Both the position numbers and the translations under genes were made by a program. The notes below the pieces were generated by a model. That model was not told the origin of the DNA. It saw only the letters and a program-made list of their open reading frames with translations, and ran no database searches. From contig NC_135769.1 of NCBI RefSeq assembly GCF_052425735.1, positions 744,001-808,000 on the forward strand: DNA of 64,000 nt, read 5' to 3'. Source of the stretch: Oculina patagonica. Lineage: Eukaryota. Positions 25,105 through 62,816 of the stretch are shown piece by piece; positions within the stretch are counted from its first letter, which is position 1; each line of letters opens with the position of its first letter.

Positions 25105-28100
25105 ATGGTTGAAATGGAGGAGAGGTCTAGGACTCTGGGGTCTCAAGAACAACGAGATCTCAAGAAGTTTTTGAAATTTCTATCGCAGAAGGTATGCTTG
25201 CGTTGTGGTGTTTTGTTTTTCTCACACTTACGAACTTGTAGATCTACTTGTATAACGTCATGTCATTCGTTAGAGGTTTTCTGATACTTAACGACAAGTA
25301 TGACAAGGATAATAGATATTTCATCTTTGAGTTTTACGAATCTCTTGGCAGAGAGAAAATTTTATTTCACAACAACACGTAAGCAAAATTAATAGTCAGT
25401 TCCGGCTAAATTGATACGAGTTTTATTCTTTCTCCAAAATTGCAAAGTACTTAGCAAGATATCGCAACTGCGGAAGTTTTTAGGTGTTTTAAATATAAAT
25501 TGCATTTTATTTGCGACTCGAAACTCCCAAAATAAATACTAGTCCAAGGAAAGATGAAACGAAACCGGTCGGCGAGCACTCACTGTCTATTTTTGTCTAT
25601 CTCTGTGACGCATACACCAAGGGGTGACGGCAGACTAGGGAGTTTTAATAGGCTCAATGTGATTGCGGTTTGGGAATTTTTGGGGTTTAAATTTTGCCCA
25701 GTATTTTTTTTTAGGTTCTGGTATTCTGAGGGGTTTCAGCTCAAGGTGCATAACATATATCATACATTGATTCTGCACAAAATTATTCCATCAAATAGAT
25801 TTATCAAAAAGGCAGACATACATCTTATAGAATATTTGTATTAACATTAAAATATTTTTTGGAGTATTTTTTGCACTTAAAAAAAATGCATGCTTTTTAT
25901 AGGGGGGTCTAGTTTTGGCCCTTGGGGATTTTTTTTTACTTTATTTGCACCTCCCATCACCTTCGAACCTGATGTACACCATGCTAATTTCTTTAGCACC
26001 TTCTGGATATTTTTGTTGTGAAATTAGGAGGGCAAATCATGACACGATACCTCACTCACTGACTGTGAGTGTCACAGTCAGACCAAGATAGTTGGTAGGT
26101 CTGTTCCTCTGGGATCTAACTTTTCCATTATTTTAACTTTCATTTTAGGCTGTTCAAGTCATTGTTCAGTCACGTCTTGGGGAAAAGATCCATACAAAGT
26201 CCAAACCCAATGCTATGGGTCAAGACTGGGTAAGCTTTTAACGTACAAATTCTCTTGAGTCACGACATCTGATTAAGCCCCTATGTATCCAAAACTGTTT
26301 TATTTAATGCAAAACAACAGTAATTTTACAAGATTGTTTTACAAGTATTGAGTTGCAGGGGTTTCAACAAAATTGGAAGTAGGCAGCTGGTTTGAGTAAA
26401 GCAGCCAACTTTAATTAAGGGAAAAAGTACCCGACTTATCTGTGCAAAGTAGCCAACAATTTTTGTCAGTCCCTGGTTAACCTGCAATCAGGCATTCTTT
26501 TTTTCCTCTTTCCTTCCTCCACAAAAAATTCCAAAAAAAAAATGCTAGCTCTATCGCAAGATAGCCGTTGGTGCTTTAATATCTAAAGCACTGGAGTTGC
26601 ATTTTATAAAGTCAGGTATAGTCAGGACTAGAGAACGCTCAATGTCATGTTATATTTTTCTGTGTGATTTTTCCTTACAGTTCAATCTTGCAATAAATGA
26701 TCATCCTGATGTGGCATCAGAGGTGAAGAAAGTTATGTCAAATGGCCGAGTTCCTTCCAAAGAGAGTCCCATGTGTGTAGAGATATCCTTGAAGACCAGT
26801 GAGGTAAATAATATATCAAACATGAGCAACAGTGTTTCATCTGCAGTGGATATCCAAACACTGAAAAGAGAGTTGAAAATACAACATGCAGTGGAGTATT
26901 TTTGATGAAATTCTAGGTGTTTGGATAGCCGATGAGACACTATCTAAGTGTTTGATATACCTTCTTAATCGAAACAAAAACCAAGGAGAAAACGGAGATG
27001 AAATAAAATCGTAAAAATTTTTGCTGATTAAGATCGGGTATCCAAAGGACTGTCAAGGTTTATTTAATATGACTTTTAGTGTTTAATTGATGAATTATTA
27101 ATGAGTTTGAGAAGGTCATCACACACTGTCAGTTATGTTTTACCAAAGTAACCTTGAAATAACAACACAGTTGAATCCTGTTAACTTGAATAACTTGATA
27201 ACTTGAAGGGAAATCAAACAAGCTTTGAGTTGTCAGGGGTCAAGTTATTGAGGGTAAAGTAAGTAAGAAAATAAGCCAGAGGGGAATTGAAAAAGGTTTA
27301 AGTTAGCCAAGGTGACTTTATTGAGGGTTCCAGTTATCAAGATTCAACTGTGTACTTCATAAATACAAACCAACTCGCTTCCTCCTCACATCATGTTTGC
27401 TTTCGGAAAAACAAGTTATTATTTTTAAGTAAACAAGTCATTATATTTTGATTGTTATTGATTGAACATGTAACAATTATATGCCTTTTTACAAATACAG
27501 GGGGAGACAATGGTGTTGGAGACTTGGTGTCTTGGTATGAATGACAGGTACGGTTTCACAGTAATCTAAGGGAATCTAAAACCTTATGTGATTCTGATTG
27601 CGTGGATTAATACTATGTCCTCCTAAGGTTTGTTTAATCCTAAAGAAATTGACAGACATTTGTGAGGCACTGTACATGTACCATGTTTCTTTTCAGAGTT
27701 GATCCAAATGCCAAAGTGACATACACAGTTTATAACAGGATTGGAATGTTACTCAAGTCTCTTCTATCTGTGACACGAGTAACGCCAGCTTATCAACTGT
27801 CACGCAAACAAGGAACAGACTTCATGATGTGTTACAAGTAAGATTATGTGATCAGTGCTTATCTTAAAGGGCAAGAGAGGCAATATTGAAGGAGTATTTA
27901 GCACAAAGATCTTTTACAGCACTATAGAGAATATTTTGAAGAATTTTCTTGTTGAATTTGAAAGGTTTTAAATGTCTCCTAGGGGGACTGGTAGTGGCAG
28001 ATATAGTGGAGGATTGCAGAGGGGGACTGGGATCCTCTCCCTTTTTGTCCAAAAATATAAGCCCCAAAATGGCCAAAATTATTTTCGCCCAAAACAAGTG

Positions 28101-51700: not shown

Positions 51701-54700
51701 TTACAAGTATTAAAAAATCTAAGATCTATACACAATAAAAAACCTACGATATACAATAATATACTAGTACCGTAAAAACCCGCAGATAAGCCGCACCTTT
51801 TTTCCAAAAATGTTCGCTCGAAAGCGGGGGTGCGGCTTATCTGCGGGAACATTCGGAAAAGGTGCCGTAAATTTTCGTTAACTGATGCTAATTTATGGAA
51901 AATTATGTAAATAAATATAACATAAAACTACAAGAGAGTACCGGTCATTGCTTTTGCAAGTTTGACAGCTCCTATACTGTTTGCAGTGTCGACAATGGCC
52001 TATAATTGTAACAGTAATATTGATACTTTTACGAGCGAGAAAATACCACGAGTATTCACGAGTAAGATGGCCAATTGTTTCTTTCTCATTTTGCACTTTG
52101 ATGGAAAATTTGTCGAACTGATTACGAAACTCTCTTTATGCAACAAGTTTATCTCCAATAGATGGCTCCCAAATCTCTTTAATTTGTCGATATGATAGCC
52201 ACGAAACCCGAACGACTCCATCGCCATCTTGTTTTGCTTTACGTTCTCGCCCTAGTCCCATATTTCGCGTCCGATCAAATGCCTGGTTACTAAGCTACGA
52301 ACGTTCTGCAAACGCGTGTTCTTGTTGTGTGTGGAAAAACTGCGTTGAATGAAGAAATGCCTGTCAACAAATGCCAGAAAAAGATCACCCATAATATGTC
52401 AAAGTTGGTTTTCATTATATTAAAGAGCTCAAATTGTGGGTAAGACTGAAGTATTTTCTGTTTCAATGTTCATTGAGTTTACGTTCGATGAAGAAGACTT
52501 CCTAAAGACTCAACTTTGGATTTTTGACTCGACTTTGGATTTTCTTTGATTTACTTTCAAAAAACTTTTTTCCAACATTTGAGTTGTTAAACTTGGGGTG
52601 CGGCTTATCTGCGGGTGCGGCTTATACGCGGGTGTTTACGGTAATAGTTCTCACTATAAAGCTGCCCCCGCCTTTTTACAATTTGTTTTTTGTCGCCTTT
52701 AATTATTAATGCCGATGGACTGCACAATTAGGCTTCTTTTTTACTGTGTCATGCGGAATTTCTTGTTGTGTGACACCGTTGCGTCCTAAAAATATTCACA
52801 AGTTCAAGTCGAATTATATTACCTAGCGCGCGGAAATAACACCTAGCGGAAATAACACATAACACATTATTCGTGATGACAACACACAAGCTTATTCCCG
52901 GGCTTATAACATTCAAAATAAACTTACAATAATTTCCAGGCCAAAAAGCCTAAAAAATTCCACGAGTAACAAAATATGGCACATTCAAAGATTCGAGAAA
53001 ACAACCCACTCTTTGGATCAAATAATCTGACAGTTTGTTAGCGATACGAATTACGTTGTACCTTGTACTACATGACAAAGTTCACGCGTTTGTTTATTAC
53101 TCGTTGTAACTTGTAAGATGTATACGATACAACAAACCTCCGAAAGCAAACCTTACAAATGTAACGCTTGGAACATAGGTAGCCGGCACGTAGCCAAGAA
53201 CAGGAAACCAATTGCTCAAAATCTTTCGACGTATTACTAACATTTGCTTCAAATATCACTTAACACAACCAAAGCAGAGAAACCGCTCGAACAAATCTGT
53301 GAACACGCGTAGGCCAAAACCGGAAAACAAAACGCTGTTGCAGATGGCGAAGCTCGAAACGCGAAGGTGACCAAACGCGACCTCGTGGTTGCAAGTTCCC
53401 GACACCACCGTGCGCGCTTGCTAAAATATTACCCGTCACGACCGTGCGCGCCTAGTTTTGTCAAATCGAGAACGCTTCGCCCATTACAAACACATTTCTT
53501 ACTTTTTCAACAAATATTCTTTGTCCTTGTATGTATACACGCGGGGAGTCCTAGGGTGCCTCCTCGGGTTTTGGCCTCTGGGCCAAAACCCTGCGGGGGC
53601 AATAAGAAACGAATTATCAATTAAAAAACTACTTATTAAAAACTAATTAAAAAAACAATCTGTATTCGAAATAAGATCTTAAAGCTAGGACAGTGACTGT
53701 GATTGATCATGGCCTTTTCCTATTCTGTGGATGTTCTGTCTGGCATGCTATAAACCAATAACCTACCTTGAAAATTGGGGATGCATAAGGCTGAGGCCCT
53801 AAGTCCCCAGGCATGATGAGGACAGATAATGATGACAAAATTGTTTTATGGTCTCATGTAGCGTTGTTTTTCATGCAAGACTGTGGTCGGGGATGACAAT
53901 CTCTCGGCTAATAAAATGACAGACAACATGACACATGGCTTGGTTACTGCTTACTCATGTAAATGGTAAACAACTGTGATGTCGTGAATTGTTGTACTGG
54001 TCATGGTGTTTATATTGTATTGATTCTGAGACCACAGCTCTCATCAAGTTTGTGCATATGGTGCATTGTGTATGTTATGTGTTCCTTGTTATTTAATGGT
54101 TATGTTTTGCCACAGGCCATGGCAGATGTTACTGGAGAAGAGTTTCGCACATTTATGACCATCCTGTCATCACTGAAAGTAATGGCCAGTGCTCATCAAG
54201 AACTTGCAGACATCGTGGCAGAACAAGCAGAACTTACCCAAGCATTTCAGGTACTACTTTGAATGGCAAACATGTAGCATGCGATAGCATCCATTTTTTT
54301 CTGCCGCTTGGTAAACAAGCACTGTAATTATTTGTAGCAACATCACAAAAATGTTGATGCTGGTCCCATGCTTATGACCTATCTGCGCATCTGCATTTAA
54401 AAGTTAAAGTTATTATATCAAGTAATAAGTCTAATTTATTTTTCACATTGATTTTTCAGCCTGGTGACGCTGATGTAATTGATAGATTCCTTTCATGTGC
54501 CAGACAAGCAATTCCATATTTTGTGGTAAGTATAATGTTATTTCAATGGCATATTAAGCCCTTGATCTAGACCTTTCATATCTTTAGCCAGCTGAGATAC
54601 TTGTTAGTGTGGTTGACTACGAACTTTAAAGCACGTAATTATTTCGTTTTGTTTCAGAAAGGAGCGTCTGCCCAAATATTCTTTGTGTACATAGTAGAAA

Positions 54701-57700
54701 GTGTTCTACCAAAGCTGAAAGAACTGGCTGCATCAGATGGTGAGGACGTCAAGCTAGAGATGTTGAAATTATGTGCAGAAATGTCACCACATGGTCTGAC
54801 AGATGAAAATGTCAAGGCAGCTATAGAACCTATCTACAACTTACTATTGGTGAGGTTTACATGTATGTCACTTGTGTAGTCTGCTAATGTACTGCCTGGT
54901 ATTTTGTTAGCCTGGTTCACACCAGCAACATAACAAAACAACAGCAAGGTCACGCAAATGCCAAAAACACCTCACATTGATGTTTTATGTCACCAGTGTG
55001 AACAACATAATATACACTGTAAAGACTTAGTTGAAACATGATGACATAAGCATTTAAGCATAAGCATAACGACCTGATCTTTTCTTTATGTCGTTATGTC
55101 CATGTTGTTGTGTCATTACACCTGTATGTCACTAGTGTGAACCAGGCCTTACAGTGTACTGCTAGTGCTTTTGTTATGAATTTGTATTAAAATTCTAGTT
55201 CTGAGAATTATTTACTTTTATCATTCTTTTTTAAGGGCTATAAGGAAGGTGAAGTTACCGGTAACCATCTCCAAGTGGCTTGTTATTAAAAAATATAGAT
55301 TTTGTATTAATTGTTTATTTTTTTTAACTTTTGTACTTCAGGAATACATGCCATTGCCCCCAGGTGAAGAAGAGGAGAAAAGTACTGAAGAAAACTCTGA
55401 GCCAAAGCTTCAGTTTTCCTATGTAGAGTGCCTTATTCTTGCATTTCACCAACTAGCAAAAAAGGTATGCTCCACTTCCTACATTGGACAATGTTTAGCT
55501 TACTTACTTAGGCCTCTTCACACCATGTAAGGCATACATTTGCAAGGCCCAGGGCAGCATTCACACTACATGTATAATGATAAGCTAAAGGAACGTCAGC
55601 TTTAGAGACTGTTTCCTTTAAGTCCCAAACAGCGTTGAAATACTAAATTCTGCTAACCTTTTTAGAAGAAATTCAAGAAGGCAGGCCCTAAAAATAAATG
55701 ACTTGATCATAACAGGAAAACTGCCTTGATTAGCCTTGATTAAAGACCAGATTCTCCCAGGGAAAATAAGTGAAGATAATTATGCAAAAAAAAACCGTAA
55801 GGGGGAGTTTACTGTATATGCAGATGTTAGTGTCAGTAACCTGTGATAGCAGATCTTTGTATAAACTAAAACAGTGGATAGCGATTTTGTCGCATGCTGG
55901 TTGGCTACTCAAACTCCAAAACAAGTAGTGAAACAAGTAGTGAAACAACAGGCTGCTTCTACATGTTTCAAGTAGATTTCAAGTTAGTTTTTGTTGTCTG
56001 TTGTAAAACAGAAGCATTTTTGCATCCAAGACTGCTTTTTCTAACAGAAAAATGACATTTTCTTGTATAGTATGTTGAAAGATTTGTATGTGTATTTATT
56101 TTGTAGAACCCAGAGTTTTTAACTGATACAAGTGCAGCGGAACGTCTTAAAGATTTCCGTCTAAGGTAAAGTTTTACTCAAGACTGTTAGCAGTCCATAT
56201 TATGCAGTCACCTTCTCATCTTGTTTGCCAATTTGATAAAATTGAAAGCCAATCATATGACAAATTAGCAGGGTTTACTGATTAGAAAACCATTCCAATG
56301 ATTATAAGTTAATGATTGCTGTTTATCTTGCCTCAGGCTTCAATACTTTGCCCAAGGCTGTCAAGTGTACATAAAACAACTGAGATTGTCGTTACAGGGC
56401 AAAACAGGTCCTGCCCTTCAGGAGGAGGAAAATAAGATTAAAATTGTAGCACTGAGGACGACTTCAAATATAAATGCTGTCATAAAGGTATGTTGCGAAG
56501 TGAAATGATGTTGGTAGAATAGAGACCTAATTACACTGGAGGCCTTAGCTGTTGGACAAAAATGTCTTTACCACACAATCCATATTGTAACCTATTTCCA
56601 TCGTCGCTAGCCTGTTCCAGGCATTCGGTTAGTTGGGAAGCGGCGCAAGAAACGGCGAGGGAAAAAATGGGGAGGGGACTAAGGCGAGGGCCCCCCCTCC
56701 CCCTTATTTTTTTTTTTCGCTCGCCGTTTTTCGCGCTTCCCAACTAACCGAACGCCTGGAACAGGCTACATCGTCGCCATCTTCGCTACCTAACGAGTAC
56801 CTGTCATTTGTCAAGTGCTGTTCTACAAAATCAAATTAATTAAATTATTGTTGGGTTTACTACATGCAAGCCCTGCGTTAAAAAAATTTGTCCATATTGT
56901 ATCCATTTCCATCCTCGCCATCGCTAGTCATCCTCACTTCCTAATGGGTTCCTGCCATTCCATTCCATTATGGCTGCCACAGGTCGGAACAACGTCGGGT
57001 AAAAAATAAAAGTCAAGGAAAAGTCAGAGAGTTTTATTTTAAGGTTGCTTCAGGTTCTGATAACGAGTGTGATTGGTAACGACCTGACTTACTATGGTCC
57101 ATAGAAACAAAAGCAAATTTAAAGTGTACATTGAACCTTGGCTACTTTTCGTAAGATCTGTCAGTGAAATTGTTTTCTGATCAGTGTCAAGTCAGTACCC
57201 TGCGACTACAGCGCACGTAGTAGCGGGAACGAATGAGAGGCGGCTGTATTCGCAGGCTATTAAGCCAAGGAAATTGTTTTTCTTCGTTTATGGCAACCAT
57301 GTGCTCATATTACAGCGGTATTGAAGCAAGTCATTAATTGTCAAATGATTTGCTCTTTTTTCAGGACCTATTTCATAATCCACCTTCCTTTAAGAGTTCC
57401 ATAACATTATCATGGAAACCACCGGTAAGTGTGAACATGGCCGCAGATGTTGATCATCTTAGTAAGTGTAAATGTAAATTTAGGAATCGTAGTATAGGTT
57501 TACTTTCTTTTAGGCCAGAATGTCCTTCAACCCACGCTATACAAAGGTTTTGTCTACGAACTAAATATTTCCATGTATGTAAGTCATAAAATAATGTCAT
57601 TCCTGTTAATTTGTAGGCGAAGACGCAAACTGCATCCACACTAACATCCCCGAAAGAGGAGAAAAACACGCTAGTAGATGAAAAGTAAGTTTGTTTGTTC

Positions 57701-60700
57701 CACGAAAGGATAAACTGTTGTAAAACATTTAATGCTTGCCCGCCCACAGTCCCTTAGGGTTTACGACTACAATCCTAATTTTTGCGTGTTCCCTCGCAAG
57801 CAAATTGTTTATTTTACTAGACGAGTTGTCACTTAATACGAAGAAGCTTCAAAAAATTGGGCAACAGCGTTGCAGGTTTTTGGAAGGTGATTCATGTTAG
57901 CTACAATAGATGTTGCGTTACAAAAATAGGTCAGCGAGCAATACATCTGACGTTTGTCGCCACAATGTCGAGTAAAAAATCGTCCTTATTAAAAGGCAAT
58001 TCGTGCAACATCGCCATTAGATTTGTAGTTTCGTTTGCATGTCGTGATGTCGTGATGTTTTTGTCCAACATTAGTGTTTAGGGTATTTTCGTACGTAAGA
58101 CTGTTGCCAACTCGGCTTTAGCTGAATAATGGTGATGTCATGTTTATATTTTTAGTTGAATGCGGAAGTGAATTGGTTCCAAATGGATGATTTCAGTTGT
58201 AAATAGGAATGAGTAAAGTTCAAAGGATTAGTATTTTTGGGCAGTGGTTCTTAAATGGGAAGGAGCGTAAAGAATATTGGTTTATATAATAGTGATAAAA
58301 TTCCCAGCGATAAAAATGGTATTCTAAATATAATTTGTACAGGGGAAAAATTTAAAAGCGTTGAATTAATGTTCTCAGTTTACTTTTGTTTTGGTCACGC
58401 GATGCTTGTAACTAATCGGAAAAATCTGTATTCGATAATTTAGTTTCCTTGTATTAAACTAGGAAAGTAAGCTGAGATGCGCTCTTTTCTGAAAATTCGA
58501 TCTGCTTTCTGCCATTGAAAGGGAATGGAGATATAGCATACAATGTGTAGCGTGAAGTGTGACGTTACCTTTTATCACGTGACGTGAGAATATTAATGCT
58601 CGACCAAATTTTTAGAGTTTTGTTTTGACATTTCGTCATTGTTGCTAAATACCTCTGCGAAGACGTTTGAAACGATCAGTCGAAACACTATCTTAGCGAC
58701 GAGTCCAGACACAAGTAGCGAATTCGTCGTTCGCTTCATCCTGTTACTCACGAGCTAGTCGAAGGATTTATTTCCTGAACTGTTGTTGTTTTGTCGTCGT
58801 CTCCTGCTCGTTAGTGCTCGACTGATTGGTTTTGTTGTCTTTGCTTACGTTGCAACTCTTGCTGCAAATACAAATGCAGCAACTACAACCCAAGAAAACG
58901 CCAGTTTAAGCGTCTTCCAACACCATGCCTCGTTTTTCGAGGTCACGGAATTGCAATCACTTTTCAGTAAATATCGACGTCAACTATGGAACAGTAGCTG
59001 TCGGCGAAGACATTGTCGTGAACGTTAATGGTCATGCTAAAAGAAAGAAGAACTTTGATCGACTTGAAGCAAGTGAATGTCGAAGAAGAAAACGGAGCGA
59101 TCGCAAGCGTTTGAAGAGACTTCACCGCAGTGGCTCAAGGTCTACCACTCCAAGCGTAGACGAGGAAACGAGAGACGCAACACTGAATGAGCTTGCACTG
59201 GGGAACGAGAGCTCCAGTTTGCAGCAAGCCCTGCAAATATTTCGCTGTTGTATTACTCCATTGCATCCCTTACGTGACAATGGCTGCTGGGATCAATTTG
59301 AAAGTGCTGCAGACCACCTTTTAGATGAATCAGCCGGTGATTCGACCCGCAAAATCATCATCTGTCTTGAAAAAAGTGTGGTGTTGAGTATCAAGAAACA
59401 GCTTGACCGGTCAGAGGAGATGATATGTGGAGTGGCGGACGAGATTTCACAGACGAGTGGTTCAGTTCGGCTGTTACTTGAAGTTCTCTCGAAGTGTTAC
59501 ATGGCTGGACTTAACCGCCGAAGAAGAATGCTTGGTAAAGCGGAAGAATGCTTGAAGACTGCCAAGAAGGTGGTATCTGGCTTCCCTCCTTGCTTAGCTG
59601 TGGCTTTATTACTGTACGAGGAGGGGAGCTGGCACCGAGACTTTGCTTCTCTTCTCACTGGCTCGAGGAATGAGCCTGTCATTGCCAAAGCCAAAGAGAA
59701 AGCAAAGGAGCTGATGCAGCGCTGTATCGACTTGTGTTGGCGGTTGGATCATGACCAGGTGTATGTACGCAAACAACACTTCGCTGTGTGCAAAATGGCG
59801 ATGATCGATCTCAGGTGTGAGACAAGCGCATCCAGGAGAAAAAGCATTCCTCCAAAGAGCATCCAAGAAGCCAGAAAAAGCCTGGAAACTCTTCAAACAG
59901 ACAATTACACCAAGAGGGAGGTGCAAGGCGCGAAGATTCAGCGTTTAATCGCAAAGGTAGACTTCAGCTATCGCCTGGAAAATTTCGACGAGGCTGAAAA
60001 GTTCGCGCAGGAGGTGCTGAATATGGCTAAAAAGTTGGAATTTAATTTGGACGTGATTCCTCTGGAAGAAAGACTTCAGGACATCCGCCGACAAATTACA
60101 GCTTCATCAACGAGCGAAACATTTCGACATATTCCTGGAATAATTGATTCATCTTCTGGGTCATTCTCTTCCAAGAATAACACACCATACTCGTCAGACT
60201 ACGAAGACAAAATATAAGTAGTGTTCAAAACTTGTGTTCAGTTCCCGTTGGTAATGTTTTGTTTTTTTCTGAATGAATTATTTTTATAGTAAACGGCATC
60301 CTCAGACAGTGAGAGGCAAACAAAAAAAGGTTGATACAGTACAATATTCCGATGTTTTGTGACTGTAAATTTAATAATTTAAACACCTCAGGATAGGTTT
60401 CTTCGATTGTTTGACTTTGAACCGCAATTATTCATAAGTTGGTCAAGCTTGCTCGATCAAGGGTGGATGAATATTGGCCTAGCTCGTGCTATGCTTATAA
60501 ATTTGGTCTGTGTTTACTCAGGATAGTAGTAATAATAATGATAATATAACTTGGCCATATCAGACCATCTTGACCTTGAACACGCGTGGCTTATAATCTA
60601 TACATAGATGTACATATTTGGTGTAGATGGAAAACGTATTCTGTGATGCGGGCCGTATTGTTGTCGCTTGGCAACGTCTATGATTATCTCTTGACAATTT

Positions 60701-61811
60701 TTTGACAGCTTTCTAATGGGTTTCTTTTAAAGTGGCCAATCAGAGTTCGAGAACGGAAAGAGTGGAGCTACTCGAAACAGAAGCCATCAAAAAAGATGTC
60801 AAGAAGTTTTCACAAATTAATCAAATACTTTATCAAGTGGCAACAGAATAACGGTCAGCATTGTAAACATGAAACAGGGTTTATGTGAAAGCTCGAAGAG
60901 ATTCCCTTGGTGGCCGTTTGTTCTACTTCATTTCGCCTTCTTTGAGGTGACATCTTTTTTGTTGAGTTTGGTTTTGATCCCCATGGAGGAATAGATGATA
61001 GAATAACTAGGGGAATAAGTCAGCGAAGTGCTTACGTTGCGTTGCATCATCAGAAATCTGAATTCTGTGAATTTAAATTGGTTACGATATCATTGTTGTA
61101 AGCGTTTTCCCTAACATGTTGATGAAGTAAATTTAGTGTATAGAGGTTTTATAACTAGAAGCTTGTCGAAGATTAACTGTTGGAATGATGTTAACTAAAA
61201 GTAATCTAAATTCTGTGAATTTTAATGTACAGTATTACGATATCGTTGTTGTGTTTTAACTAACGTTGAGGAATTGCATTAAACATTAGGCAAATAGTAG
61301 TTTTGCATCTCATTATTACCAGATTTACTGTAAAAAGTATGAACGAAAACTCCCTTCAAGTAACTCTGGATAAATTCTGTACAGTATGCACAAAACCTCG
61401 CAGATTTTTTTTACTTGAGCCGAGGTCTTCTCATCCTTGCTTTGCTTTGGTGATAGTAGTTCTCATTCCTCCCGAGTGGTCCGCAATCACAAGCGTTGCA
61501 TATGGAGACTTGTCAGTGTAAGATTCACTAAGCAATGGAATCTCATTATTTATTCTATCTCGTTATATTTCCGCAGGCGAAAACGTGCAGGGATCACGCC
61601 GATCAAGTTCGACCTTCCACCCGAGACGAAACAAGCTAAAAAGCCCAAGGGAAGCACAGTCACAGTGTACACTCCGCCTGGTCGGCGTACTGGAGCGTCA
61701 AACGGCGAAGTCAAGGGTCAAACCATGCCTGAGGGAGGACGGGGTCGGGGATTTCGACAAGGGGGACGGAACCGAGGTCGCGGACGGGGCTGGAGAGGAG
61801 GCAGATATTAG
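48706..61811 (+). CDS. API5: Apoptosis inhibitor 5
   Basis: MAGVEDLYKQFGILADAKE...KRLASQFIARFFKFFP...IRRQAIK.LP...RIADVLTQLLQ...DVTGEEF...EYMPLPP...LQFSYVECL...LKDFRLRLQYFA...DLFHNPPSFKS, then an RG-rich tail. Exons: 48706-48774, 48903-49064, 50025-50124, 50850-50915, 51260-51417, 54116-54250, 54460-54525, 54658-54849, 55342-55464, 56107-56165, 56337-56487, 57365-57424, 57617-57684, 61577-61811. Confidence 0.96.
51770..52641. mobile_element. pogo/Tigger-like non-autonomous element (TA TSD) nested in an older insertion with a (TAAG)n tail
   Basis: ta|ccgtaaaaacccgcagataagccgcacc ... gggtgcggcttatacgcgggtgtttacgg|ta. (taag)n at about 51609-51635. Confidence 0.85.
53881..54037 (+). ncRNA. Candidate intronic box C/D sno/scaRNA (orphan)
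   Basis: 8-bp terminal stem ctgtggtc/gaccacag directly encloses a 3-nt bulge + GATGA (C box GGGATGA, 53890-53896) and a CTGA D box (54026-54029). It has a long internal hairpin and ends 78 nt upstream of the 3' splice site at 54115. Confidence 0.6.
54910..55148. mobile_element. PIF/Harbinger-type MITE
   Basis: tta|gcctggttcacac ... gtgtgaaccaggcc|tta. Confidence 0.75.
56608..56768. mobile_element. AcademH-like MITE with 9-bp TSD CATCGTCGC
   Basis: tagcctgttccaggc.ttcggttagttggg ... cccaactaaccgaacgcctggaacaggcta. TSD at 56599-56607 and 56769-56777. A half copy starts at 62732. Confidence 0.88.
58925..60217 (+). CDS. Nested intronless gene, 430 aa: RHIM-like N-terminal motif, basic NLS-like segment, TPR-like alpha-helical domain
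   Basis: Uninterrupted 1293-bp ORF with caccATG context, noticeably more GC-rich than the flanks. It lies wholly within the last API5 intron (57685-61576). Helix pairs such as MLGKAEECLKTAKK, KAKELMQRCIDLC and ENFDEAEKFAQEVLNMAKK have TPR-like spacing. Confidence 0.8.
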   Translation: MPRFSRSRNCNHFSVNIDVNYGTVAVGEDIVVNVNGHAKRKKNFDRLEASECRRRKRSDRKRLKRLHRSGSRSTTPSVDEETRDATLNELALGNESSSLQQALQIFRCCITPLHPLRDNGCWDQFESAADHLLDESAGDSTRKIIICLEKSVVLSIKKQLDRSEEMICGVADEISQTSGSVRLLLEVLSKCYMAGLNRRRRMLGKAEECLKTAKKVVSGFPPCLAVALLLYEEGSWHRDFASLLTGSRNEPVIAKAKEKAKELMQRCIDLCWRLDHDQVYVRKQHFAVCKMAMIDLRCETSASRRKSIPPKSIQEARKSLETLQTDNYTKREVQGAKIQRLIAKVDFSYRLENFDEAEKFAQEVLNMAKKLEFNLDVIPLEERLQDIRRQITASSTSETFRHIPGIIDSSSGSFSSKNNTPYSSDYEDKI

Positions 61812-62816
61812 ATGGTTTACTATTCTCGAACGTCCCATAGAAAGTGCAGAATTATTTTTATTAGCTTGCGAACTTTGTACAGTTGACTTAACTACAACTA
61901 CAAGTCAGGACTGGGTTATTTATGGAGAAGACTATAATTTGAGTTAGTTCGCCTTGCTCATAAGCTTTTTTTAACTCTATCTTCATGCGCCGTCCAACAG
62001 ACGTTAGTGTACTTTAGAAAATGCTCAGCAGTGTTTTTTTTAAGTTGGAAATTTTGAAAGAATAATAGATTTAACTACGGAGTAAATTATTGAACAAGAC
62101 TCCAGAAACCCCAGGTTTGAGCGTCTGGGATCGTTGTGCAAAGACGAATTCAAAATTGTAGCAACAGAGCACTTGATAATATTCATCAGTCTAACGTTAC
62201 AAATTAAAAGGTCGTATCGATTTTTGGTGATACTTGTTGCTCTTTCGAATCCGAAAAGACTATTGATCGGTTTATTTTGACAGTTTATTGTCCAGGCAGG
62301 GATAGTCCAAGCAGAAACAACATAACATCAATAGCTTTAGCATTAATTACGACTTGACGTCTAAGTAAGTAATTCTGCCCAAACGTTCCCAGGTTTCTTA
62401 GCGTGCGAGGCTGGAGTCCAGTCTTCCTGAGGTTTCTGAAGTGGAAAGTGACTTTTATTTTGTTTTGAGATCCAGTTCAGTTGCCCTTTTTAGGCGAGAA
62501 GTCAAATGCAGTGATGATAACGATCAGCCTATGTACATCAACCCACTTTCGATTTTTCTTGACGTTAAATTTCGATCATCACGATCTTTGGTGCCTATAA
62601 AATAAAAGGCTGTTATGTTTCTTTAATGTGTGTCTTGTTGCTTCATCGCCTGTTTCCTAAGTCGGTTTTTGCAGATCATTCTGTGCCAATTAAAAGCTGG
62701 TTAAGTGACGTGACAGGTTTCTTTCCAGCTGTAGCCTGTTCCAGGCGTTCGGTTAGTTGGGGACTAGCTCGAAGAATGGCGAGCGAAAAATTAGGGGAGG
62801 GGTGTAGAGGAGAATT

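Follow-up and report, generated by a model that had tools for sequence, protein, structure and literature searches.

What kind of protein is encoded by an intronless gene nested in the API5 gene of the coral Oculina patagonica, and is the short motif near its N-terminus related to the RHIM of RIPK3? The gene lies in a stretch of 64,000 nucleotides (NCBI RefSeq assembly GCF_052425735.1, contig NC_135769.1, positions 744,001 to 808,000 of the forward strand), which was analysed as a whole and is called the window below; all coordinates are those of the window. An earlier note, made from the DNA letters alone, had proposed that the encoded protein combines a RHIM-like motif, a highly basic stretch and a TPR domain in an apoptosis-inhibitor locus. 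Functional amyloids of the RHIM type have been described in vertebrate necroptosis, in the IMD signalling of arthropods and in the NLR systems of fungi and bacteria. Our analysis suggests that the motif of the coral protein is RHIM-like and has its best similarity to the RIPK3 RHIM, and that the protein belongs to an anthozoan family in which such motifs accompany a TPR-like domain.

The first point to settle is whether the motif is part of a protein at all. Over the whole open reading frame (ORF), the ratio of nonsynonymous to synonymous substitution rates (dN/dS) is 0.09-0.17 in comparison with three orthologues. The ratio is about 0.10 in the TPR part, and 0.11 for residues 1-95 in comparison with the closest orthologue. 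These values mark the gene as real and under purifying selection. An in-frame stop codon is found 18 nt 5′ of the ATG, the first in-frame ATG precedes the RHIM-like motif, and the next in-frame Met is at about residue 166, inside the helical TPR domain, so that a downstream start would truncate the TPR fold. Therefore, any full-length product includes the motif. It might be argued that the mature protein nevertheless lacks the motif, either owing to a downstream translation start or because the ORF, a remnant in an API5 intron, is not translated. Evidence from transcripts was not obtained: Logan contigs encoding near-identical proteins are unspliced and collinear with the genome, and thus uninformative on transcription. 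However, the dN/dS values and the position of the next Met make such a scenario highly improbable. Moreover, paralogues outside API5 retain the motif, which indicates conservation at the protein level.

The motif (residues 11-37) reads as proposed in the earlier note, including V-A-V-G at residues 24-27 and the Ala (A25) that the note had pointed out in place of the RHIM Gln. Its parts are strand 1 (V15-N-I17), a loop running from N20 to G22, strand 2 (V24-A-V26) followed by G27, and strand 3 (I30-V-V-N-V34). In an alignment with 37 homologues the motif is conserved in 36 of them, N20, G22 and G27 each at 90% or more, while the segment following it varies in length from 0 to 150 residues, so that a conserved motif stands next to a diverging linker, as the note had envisaged. 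The logo derived from 67 non-redundant copies, with the tetrad Gly as the alignment anchor, is [FY]-x-[VI]-N-[IV]-x-N-N-S-G-T-[VL]-[VQI]-[IV]-G-D-N-N-V-[VI]-N-V. Position 1 of the tetrad is aliphatic in 97% of these copies and position 3 is aliphatic or Cys in 94%. Position 2 is occupied by Val in 28 copies, Gln in 19 of the 67, Ile in 10, Ala in 3 and Thr in 3. In an AlphaFold2 (AF2) model built on 37 homologues, the predicted local distance difference test (pLDDT) is below 50 at residues 1-22 and 29-93, and two strands of three residues each are placed inside the motif (residues 24-26 and 30-32). The motif is thus predicted to sit in a disordered N-terminus (residues 1-93). A short motif flanked by natively disordered sequence is a trait of RHIMs, and the AF2 pLDDT profile shows it here.

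Relatives that carry the canonical tetrad provide a further clue. The pattern [IVL]-Q-[IVLC]-G was found within the N-terminal region in 18 of 76 distant relatives, compared with 1.7 ± 1.3 (maximum 6) in 500 shuffles. In these relatives the Q tetrad occupies the position of the coral V-V/I/A-V/I-G and usually has D-x-N next to it. One coral paralogue, P0028, itself carries G-T-V-Q-V-G-D. Profiles of the Q-type and V-type motifs align in register (hhalign probability 83%, E 9e-6), and in an unrooted tree of the TPR domain Gln and aliphatic residues at tetrad position 2 have been swapped at least six times. The window gene is placed in that tree within a supported 10-member clade that is wholly of the aliphatic/Ala type. 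Q-type and V-type paralogues are also found adjacent to each other within the same gene clusters, and in the Nematostella protein P0151 one of the two motif copies is Q-type and the other aliphatic-type. These observations show that V-type and Q-type motifs are linked within one family.

The motif was also compared with the sequences of solved structures. Three motif profiles were searched against 177,635 distinct PDB sequences, and the human RIPK3 RHIM was the top match of each. The coral profile A2, which contains no Gln-type copies, matched RIPK3 with E 0.32 on its fibril core V-N-I-Y-N-C-S-G-V-Q-V-G-D-N-N-Y-L-T-M. For the Q-type profile A3 the E-value was 0.17, and for the combined profile A5 of 63 segments 0.017 (18.2 bits), about 100-fold ahead of the next unrelated match (E 1.6); A3 and A5 are partly circular because their Q-type seeds were picked by a tetrad regular expression, and A2 alone is free of this bias. 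The A5 match, too, is aligned on the fibril core. The RIPK1, ZBP1 and TRIF chains were not retrieved by the three profiles. In Pfam, RHIM was the only family recurring on the Q-type segments (5 of 18 at E up to 10, best E 0.004). In the HMMER alignment with the RIPK3 chains 7DAC/7DA4, V15, I17, V24, V26, G22 and G27 match human RIPK3 (hRIPK3) V450, I452, V458, V460, G457 and G461, respectively. Across the 67 copies the four Val/Ile positions are aliphatic in 72%, 70%, 97% and 94%, in the same order. A deep mutational scan of RIPK1 and RIPK3 found this aliphatic tetrad of hRIPK3 (V450, I452, V458, V460), flanked by the glycines G457 and G461, to be essential for nucleation (bioRxiv 10.64898/2026.02.19.706818). 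Taken at the level of sequence, the RHIM-like motif appears to have its best similarity to the RIPK3 RHIM.

Could this match be a by-product of composition? The motif might be an Asn/Val/Gly-rich biased stretch, similar to hexapeptide repeats or beta-solenoids, with a structural or solubility role. The runner-up PDB matches (E 0.5-8) are hexapeptide-repeat beta-helices and unrelated enzymes. The left-handed beta-helix hexapeptide proteins LpxA and dynactin p27 are among these weak matches, and composition alone thus favours beta-solenoid-like hits. In addition, a language-model look-alike search with residues 8-40 returned only noise, with scores not above 0.59. On the other hand, specific positions are conserved, as seen in the Asn and Gly residues of the loop and turn and in tetrad positions 1 and 3. 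Among 78 N-termini from distant relatives, 22 scored 6 bits or more with a hidden Markov model built from the coral-type motifs only, compared with 2 reversed and 0 shuffled controls. This position-specific conservation and these controls weaken the compositional explanation, as does the lead of RIPK3 in the broad profile, and we regard it as improbable. The motif goes beyond a chance arrangement.

Several results nevertheless weigh against the motif being a RHIM-type assembly element. First, no member of the family attains the gathering score of Pfam RHIM (PF12721), the best being P0161 with 15.9 bits versus 20; when scored against this model, as the earlier note had suggested, neither the window protein nor any of 25 coral-type segments gave a match at E up to 10. 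Because the window protein and its relatives miss the cutoff, we call the motif RHIM-like, and it does not appear to be a RHIM family member. Second, the window tetrad agrees with the canonical (V/I)-Q-(V/I/L/C)-G at positions 1, 3 and 4 and has Ala at position 2, and T23, after the first Gly, adds one residue to the inter-glycine loop relative to RIPK3. Insertions at the start of strand 2 have been reported to increase nucleation of hRIPK3 (bioRxiv 10.64898/2026.02.19.706818). Third, the PDB E-values are marginal for a profile of 28 positions, apart from the partial circularity described above. Fourth, motif residues outside the pattern evolve fast between genera (dN/dS 0.7-1.2 over 25 codons); the motif dN/dS is zero in comparison with the closest orthologue. 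Selection thus seems to keep the scaffold positions and not the exact motif sequence. Fifth, the motif is undetected in 35 of 144 relatives possessing an N-terminus. Finally, transcript evidence is missing, as stated, and searches that were region-restricted, look-alike or in-window, not proteome-wide, found no motif-bearing protein with a different effector domain: the region-restricted homology search with residues 20-62 of P0018, which has a consensus-like N-terminus, scored 5 candidates and yielded nothing new, and a six-frame motif scan of the 64-kb window found no second copy. The RHIM-like reading of the earlier note therefore holds as far as the best PDB match (the RIPK3 core) and the relatives with canonical tetrads are concerned, and falls short at the Pfam RHIM cutoff and at the missing Gln.

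The remainder of the protein consists of a basic stretch, a linker, a helical domain and a tail (Table 1). Residues 36-70 include 16 Lys/Arg among 35 residues, with a net charge of +12. The highly basic stretch that had been noticed behind the motif fits, by regular expression, the classical bipartite pattern (K/R)(K/R)-X10-12-(K/R) in at least 3 of 5 of a nuclear localization signal (NLS). A bipartite-NLS-like pattern is present in 66 of 87 close relatives, and K41, R60 and R62 are conserved at 90% or more. Nuclear import through this stretch may be envisaged.

For the helical domain, Foldseek returned TSK/BRU1, LGN/Pins, subunits of APC/C, Rap/NprR, MalT domain III and IFIT5 at E of about 1e-3. 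Its probability was 1.0 to many TPR structures, yet the template modelling (TM) scores were only 0.3-0.45. A fold search of Swiss-Prot retrieved generic TPR proteins only (TTC19, Iml2, GutR; TM below 0.5). In Pfam, TPR_12 scored 15.3 bits on the window protein, below its cutoff of 30.1, and TPR models exceed the threshold in a few relatives. The proposed TPR domain is thus supported by a predicted fold of generic type and fails the Pfam sequence cutoff. The closest clusters in the AlphaFold database are uncharacterized proteins, one of which is annotated as 'Caspase-2' and has the TPR fold at its C-terminus. Whole-protein searches of Pfam and PDB sequences found no RHIM and no solved relative. 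There are weak but repeated echoes of the sensor TPRs of STAND-type proteins, namely MalT, GutR and the C-terminus of a fungal NLR, and Pfam TPR_MalT is found in 10 of 64 relatives. These echoes fit the earlier note's idea of a sensor without a nucleoside triphosphatase (NTPase) domain, yet do not establish it. In the Ser-rich tail the mean majority-residue fraction across paralogues is 0.63, equal to the level of the TPR domain, and dN is 0 in comparison with the closest orthologue. This tail could be a phospho-regulated or a TPR-binding peptide.

Table 1. Parts of the nested gene and the surrounding API5 exons in the window
Feature	Window coordinates	Strand	Basis and remarks
Intronless single-exon gene, 430 aa	58925..60217 (stop codon included)	+	Uninterrupted ORF; order from N- to C-terminus: RHIM-like motif, basic stretch, Ser/Thr-acidic linker, TPR-like domain, Ser-rich tail
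RHIM-like motif, aa 11-37	58955..59035	+	Conservation; best PDB match RIPK3 RHIM core
Core tetrad V-A-V-G, aa 24-27	58994..59005	+	Counterpart of RIPK3 V-Q-V-G
Basic stretch, aa 39-68	59039..59128	+	Regular expression, charge count; bipartite-NLS-like pattern at aa 39-57
Ser/Thr-rich acidic linker, aa 69-95, predicted disordered	59129..59209	+	AF2, composition
TPR-like alpha-superhelix, aa 96-396, about 15 helices	59210..60112	+	AF2 pLDDT >90, Foldseek
Ser-rich C-terminal tail, aa 397-430, predicted disordered, acidic Y-E/D-D-K-L/I end	60113..60214	+	Conservation
API5 exons 5′ of the nested gene	55339-55467 and 56335-56490	+	Pfam API5 E 6e-9 and 2e-13, profile 314-344 and 380-430 of 536; collinear with L003
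Probable last API5 exon, 3′ of the nested gene	61527..61817	+	80% aa identity to L003; weak match to end of API5 profile (481-536 of 536), E 0.074

How might such a protein work? On balance we lean towards the N-terminal motif being a RHIM-type cross-beta assembly motif, carried on a disordered basic linker and tethered to a ligand-binding TPR domain whose clustering would nucleate stacking. The TPR superhelix would bind a peptide or protein ligand or a scaffold. When several copies are brought together, their exposed N-terminal motifs would stack as in RIPK3 to form a cross-beta assembly, predicted to consist of three short strands with turns at glycines and an interface of aliphatic residues, in which V-A-V-G of the window protein would serve as an aliphatic variant of V-Q-V-G. 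The resulting oligomers, homotypic or between paralogues, would then start or relay a signal with no NTPase involved. A role of the nested protein in immunity or cell death may be supposed.

The main competing possibility is that the motif is a conserved beta-strand element that does not form amyloid. It could be a peptide ligand of the TPR groove, acting within the molecule or on a paralogue (autoinhibition, head-to-tail dimerisation), or a site of beta-augmentation, and its likeness to RHIM would be convergent. Extended peptides are typical ligands of TPR domains, and the best fold matches include no other kind than peptide-binding TPRs, namely LGN, Rap/NprR and APPBP2. The motif and the TPR domain occur together throughout the family, and, as discussed above, the similarity to RHIM is statistically marginal and does not reach the Pfam model. 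However, AF2 leaves the motif undocked on the TPR domain, with an N-terminal pLDDT of 34-47, and the length range of the linker also argues against groove binding. Moreover, the three-strand pattern of aliphatic, Gly and Asn residues agrees at each position with the fibril core of RIPK3, and the exact tetrad is present in Q-type members. Duplicated motifs, found in some members, suit stacking better than binding in a groove. We therefore hold the non-amyloid explanation to be rather unlikely and prefer cross-beta assembly of the RIPK3 type.

The family itself offers further clues. The homologues comprise 88 close relatives, and an exhaustive search of representatives gave 111 matches. The named members, all annotated as 'uncharacterized', come from Desmophyllum pertusum, Acropora millepora, Actinia tenebrosa and Nematostella vectensis; therefore, the family spans at least stony corals and sea anemones. 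Most paralogues form tandem or inverted clusters of intronless genes away from API5. In the clusters L004 (1791-18679) and L001/L002 (2075-7986) some members are truncated and ORFs for reverse transcriptase (RVT_1) lie nearby. The genes next to family members in L001, L002 and L004 are either paralogues with this motif-TPR layout or retroelement ORFs, and no adjacent effector gene with a matching motif was found there. Two motif copies separated by a disordered linker are present in P0012 (aa 71-98 and 155-182), P0151 (aa 100-127 and 207-234) and P0161 (aa 35-62 and 127-154). A Pfam survey of 64 distant relatives yielded TPR domains and a single Ank, and none of the death-fold, TIR, kinase, NACHT or caspase type. 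No NTPase domain was found by Pfam in the window protein or in these 64 relatives, in agreement with the NTPase-less layout of motif and TPR that the earlier note had described. These proteins appear to constitute an anthozoan family of intronless, often tandemly duplicated genes, whose products carry a RHIM-type motif in one or two copies at the N-terminus, joined by a disordered basic/Ser-rich linker to a TPR-like domain at the C-terminus. A much broader proposal, which we put forward tentatively and consider on the whole doubtful, is that they are NTPase-less receptors or adaptors that couple a TPR sensor directly to an amyloid switch of the RHIM type. The Q-type and aliphatic paralogues would then provide a combinatorial code of homo- and hetero-amyloids, RHIM signalling would have been present at or before the cnidarian-bilaterian ancestor, independently of RIP kinases, and the API5-nested copy would be a conserved single-copy member.

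The position inside API5 is shared with another coral assembly. The window segment 44988-62473 is collinear with L003, an orthologous locus encoding a protein with 69% identity to that of the window. The same intronless gene is found between API5 exons on the same strand in L003; therefore, the nesting in the last API5 intron is conserved across genera. The earlier note's 'apoptosis-inhibitor locus' is accurate in so far as the gene is nested in API5 and the orthologue keeps this arrangement, and concerns position, not function: a functional link to API5 was considered and found to be unsupported, most paralogues being clustered elsewhere. Two blocks, 57341-57436 and 57635-57772, are conserved with L003, L005 and L006 and precede the nested ORF by 1.2-1.6 kb. 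They might represent a further API5 exon, since positions of about 430-481 of the profile are unaccounted for, or the promoter or 5′ untranslated region of the nested gene. Another block in an API5 intron, 53854-54014, matches L003 in every one of the six tblastx frames and thus seems to be conserved at the nucleotide rather than the protein level. A short block at 26839-26981 corresponds to L003 15179-15321 in inverted orientation and out of synteny, and is probably a repeat or a fragment of a mobile element.

Invertebrate RHIMs have been described in Branchiostoma, insects, crustaceans and molluscs (PMC4262963, PMC12119088, PMC13506858), and the origin of RHIM-bearing RIP kinases has been placed in molluscs or lancelets. 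In the searchable literature we found no description of a cnidarian RHIM-like/TPR family, of a coral RHIM, or of the named LOC identifiers of this family. If the coral family assembles as predicted, the signalling principle would be extended to early-branching animals, in an architecture free of kinase, death fold and NTPase. Research on coral immunity would also gain a concrete candidate switch. In addition, the natural variation from Gln to Val, Ile or Ala in the tetrad is a ready experiment on the contribution of Gln.

Among known systems, the RHIM of vertebrate RIPK3 and RIPK1 is likewise a motif of about 20 residues in a disordered region. The likeness to hRIPK3 V450-M468 extends to V-N-I in strand 1, an Asn/Ser loop ending in Gly, a phi-x-phi-Gly tetrad (phi, hydrophobic), a D-N-N turn and an aliphatic third strand, and some relatives in the coral family have the exact (I/V/L)-Q-(I/V/L)-G tetrad of canonical RHIMs. 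In contrast, the window copy has Ala, and the coral family mostly Val or Ile, in place of Gln, an extra residue follows the first Gly, and the Pfam score is below the cutoff. The coral motif is attached to a TPR-like domain and not to a kinase, death domain, TIR or Z-alpha domain, and its amyloid formation is predicted. RIPK1 homologues have been reported to be missing from cnidarians (PMC12119088). The members of the coral family that have two motif copies resemble ZBP1; both ZBP1 and HET-s carry two copies (PMC4262963).

The cryptic RHIMs (cRHIMs) of PGRP-LC/LE, Imd and Pirk, shrimp SRB2 and insect STING resemble the coral motif in another respect: they too are divergent invertebrate motifs without Gln, located in disordered regions. 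Arthropod cRHIMs lacking Gln (VxxG) still form signalling amyloids (2026 review, PMC13506858). However, cRHIMs belong to receptors and adaptors of the IMD pathway, the flanking protein has no homology to the coral protein, and amyloid formation has been shown experimentally for cRHIMs, whereas that of the coral motif is predicted. TRIF (TICAM1) also combines a TPR-like helical domain and a RHIM in one adaptor. Its order is reversed, with an N-terminal helical domain, a TIR and a C-terminal RHIM, and no homology to the coral protein is detectable. A TRIF-like reading was rejected in view of the missing TIR, the reversed domain order and a fold match to IFIT5 of a generic kind (rank 30).

Finally, the amyloid motifs of fungal and bacterial NLR systems (HET-s/NWD2, PP, sigma, BASS) and the RHIM-NACHT-repeat proteins of Branchiostoma (Kajava et al. 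2014) provide a comparison at the level of architecture. The coral protein differs from them in having no NACHT or NB-ARC between motif and repeats, and the gene neighbours are paralogues of the same architecture or retroelement ORFs in the family's clusters, and API5 exons in the window. Like them, it has a short N-terminal motif, C-terminal repeats and clustered paralogues, and its TPR-like domain weakly echoes the sensor TPRs of STAND-type proteins.

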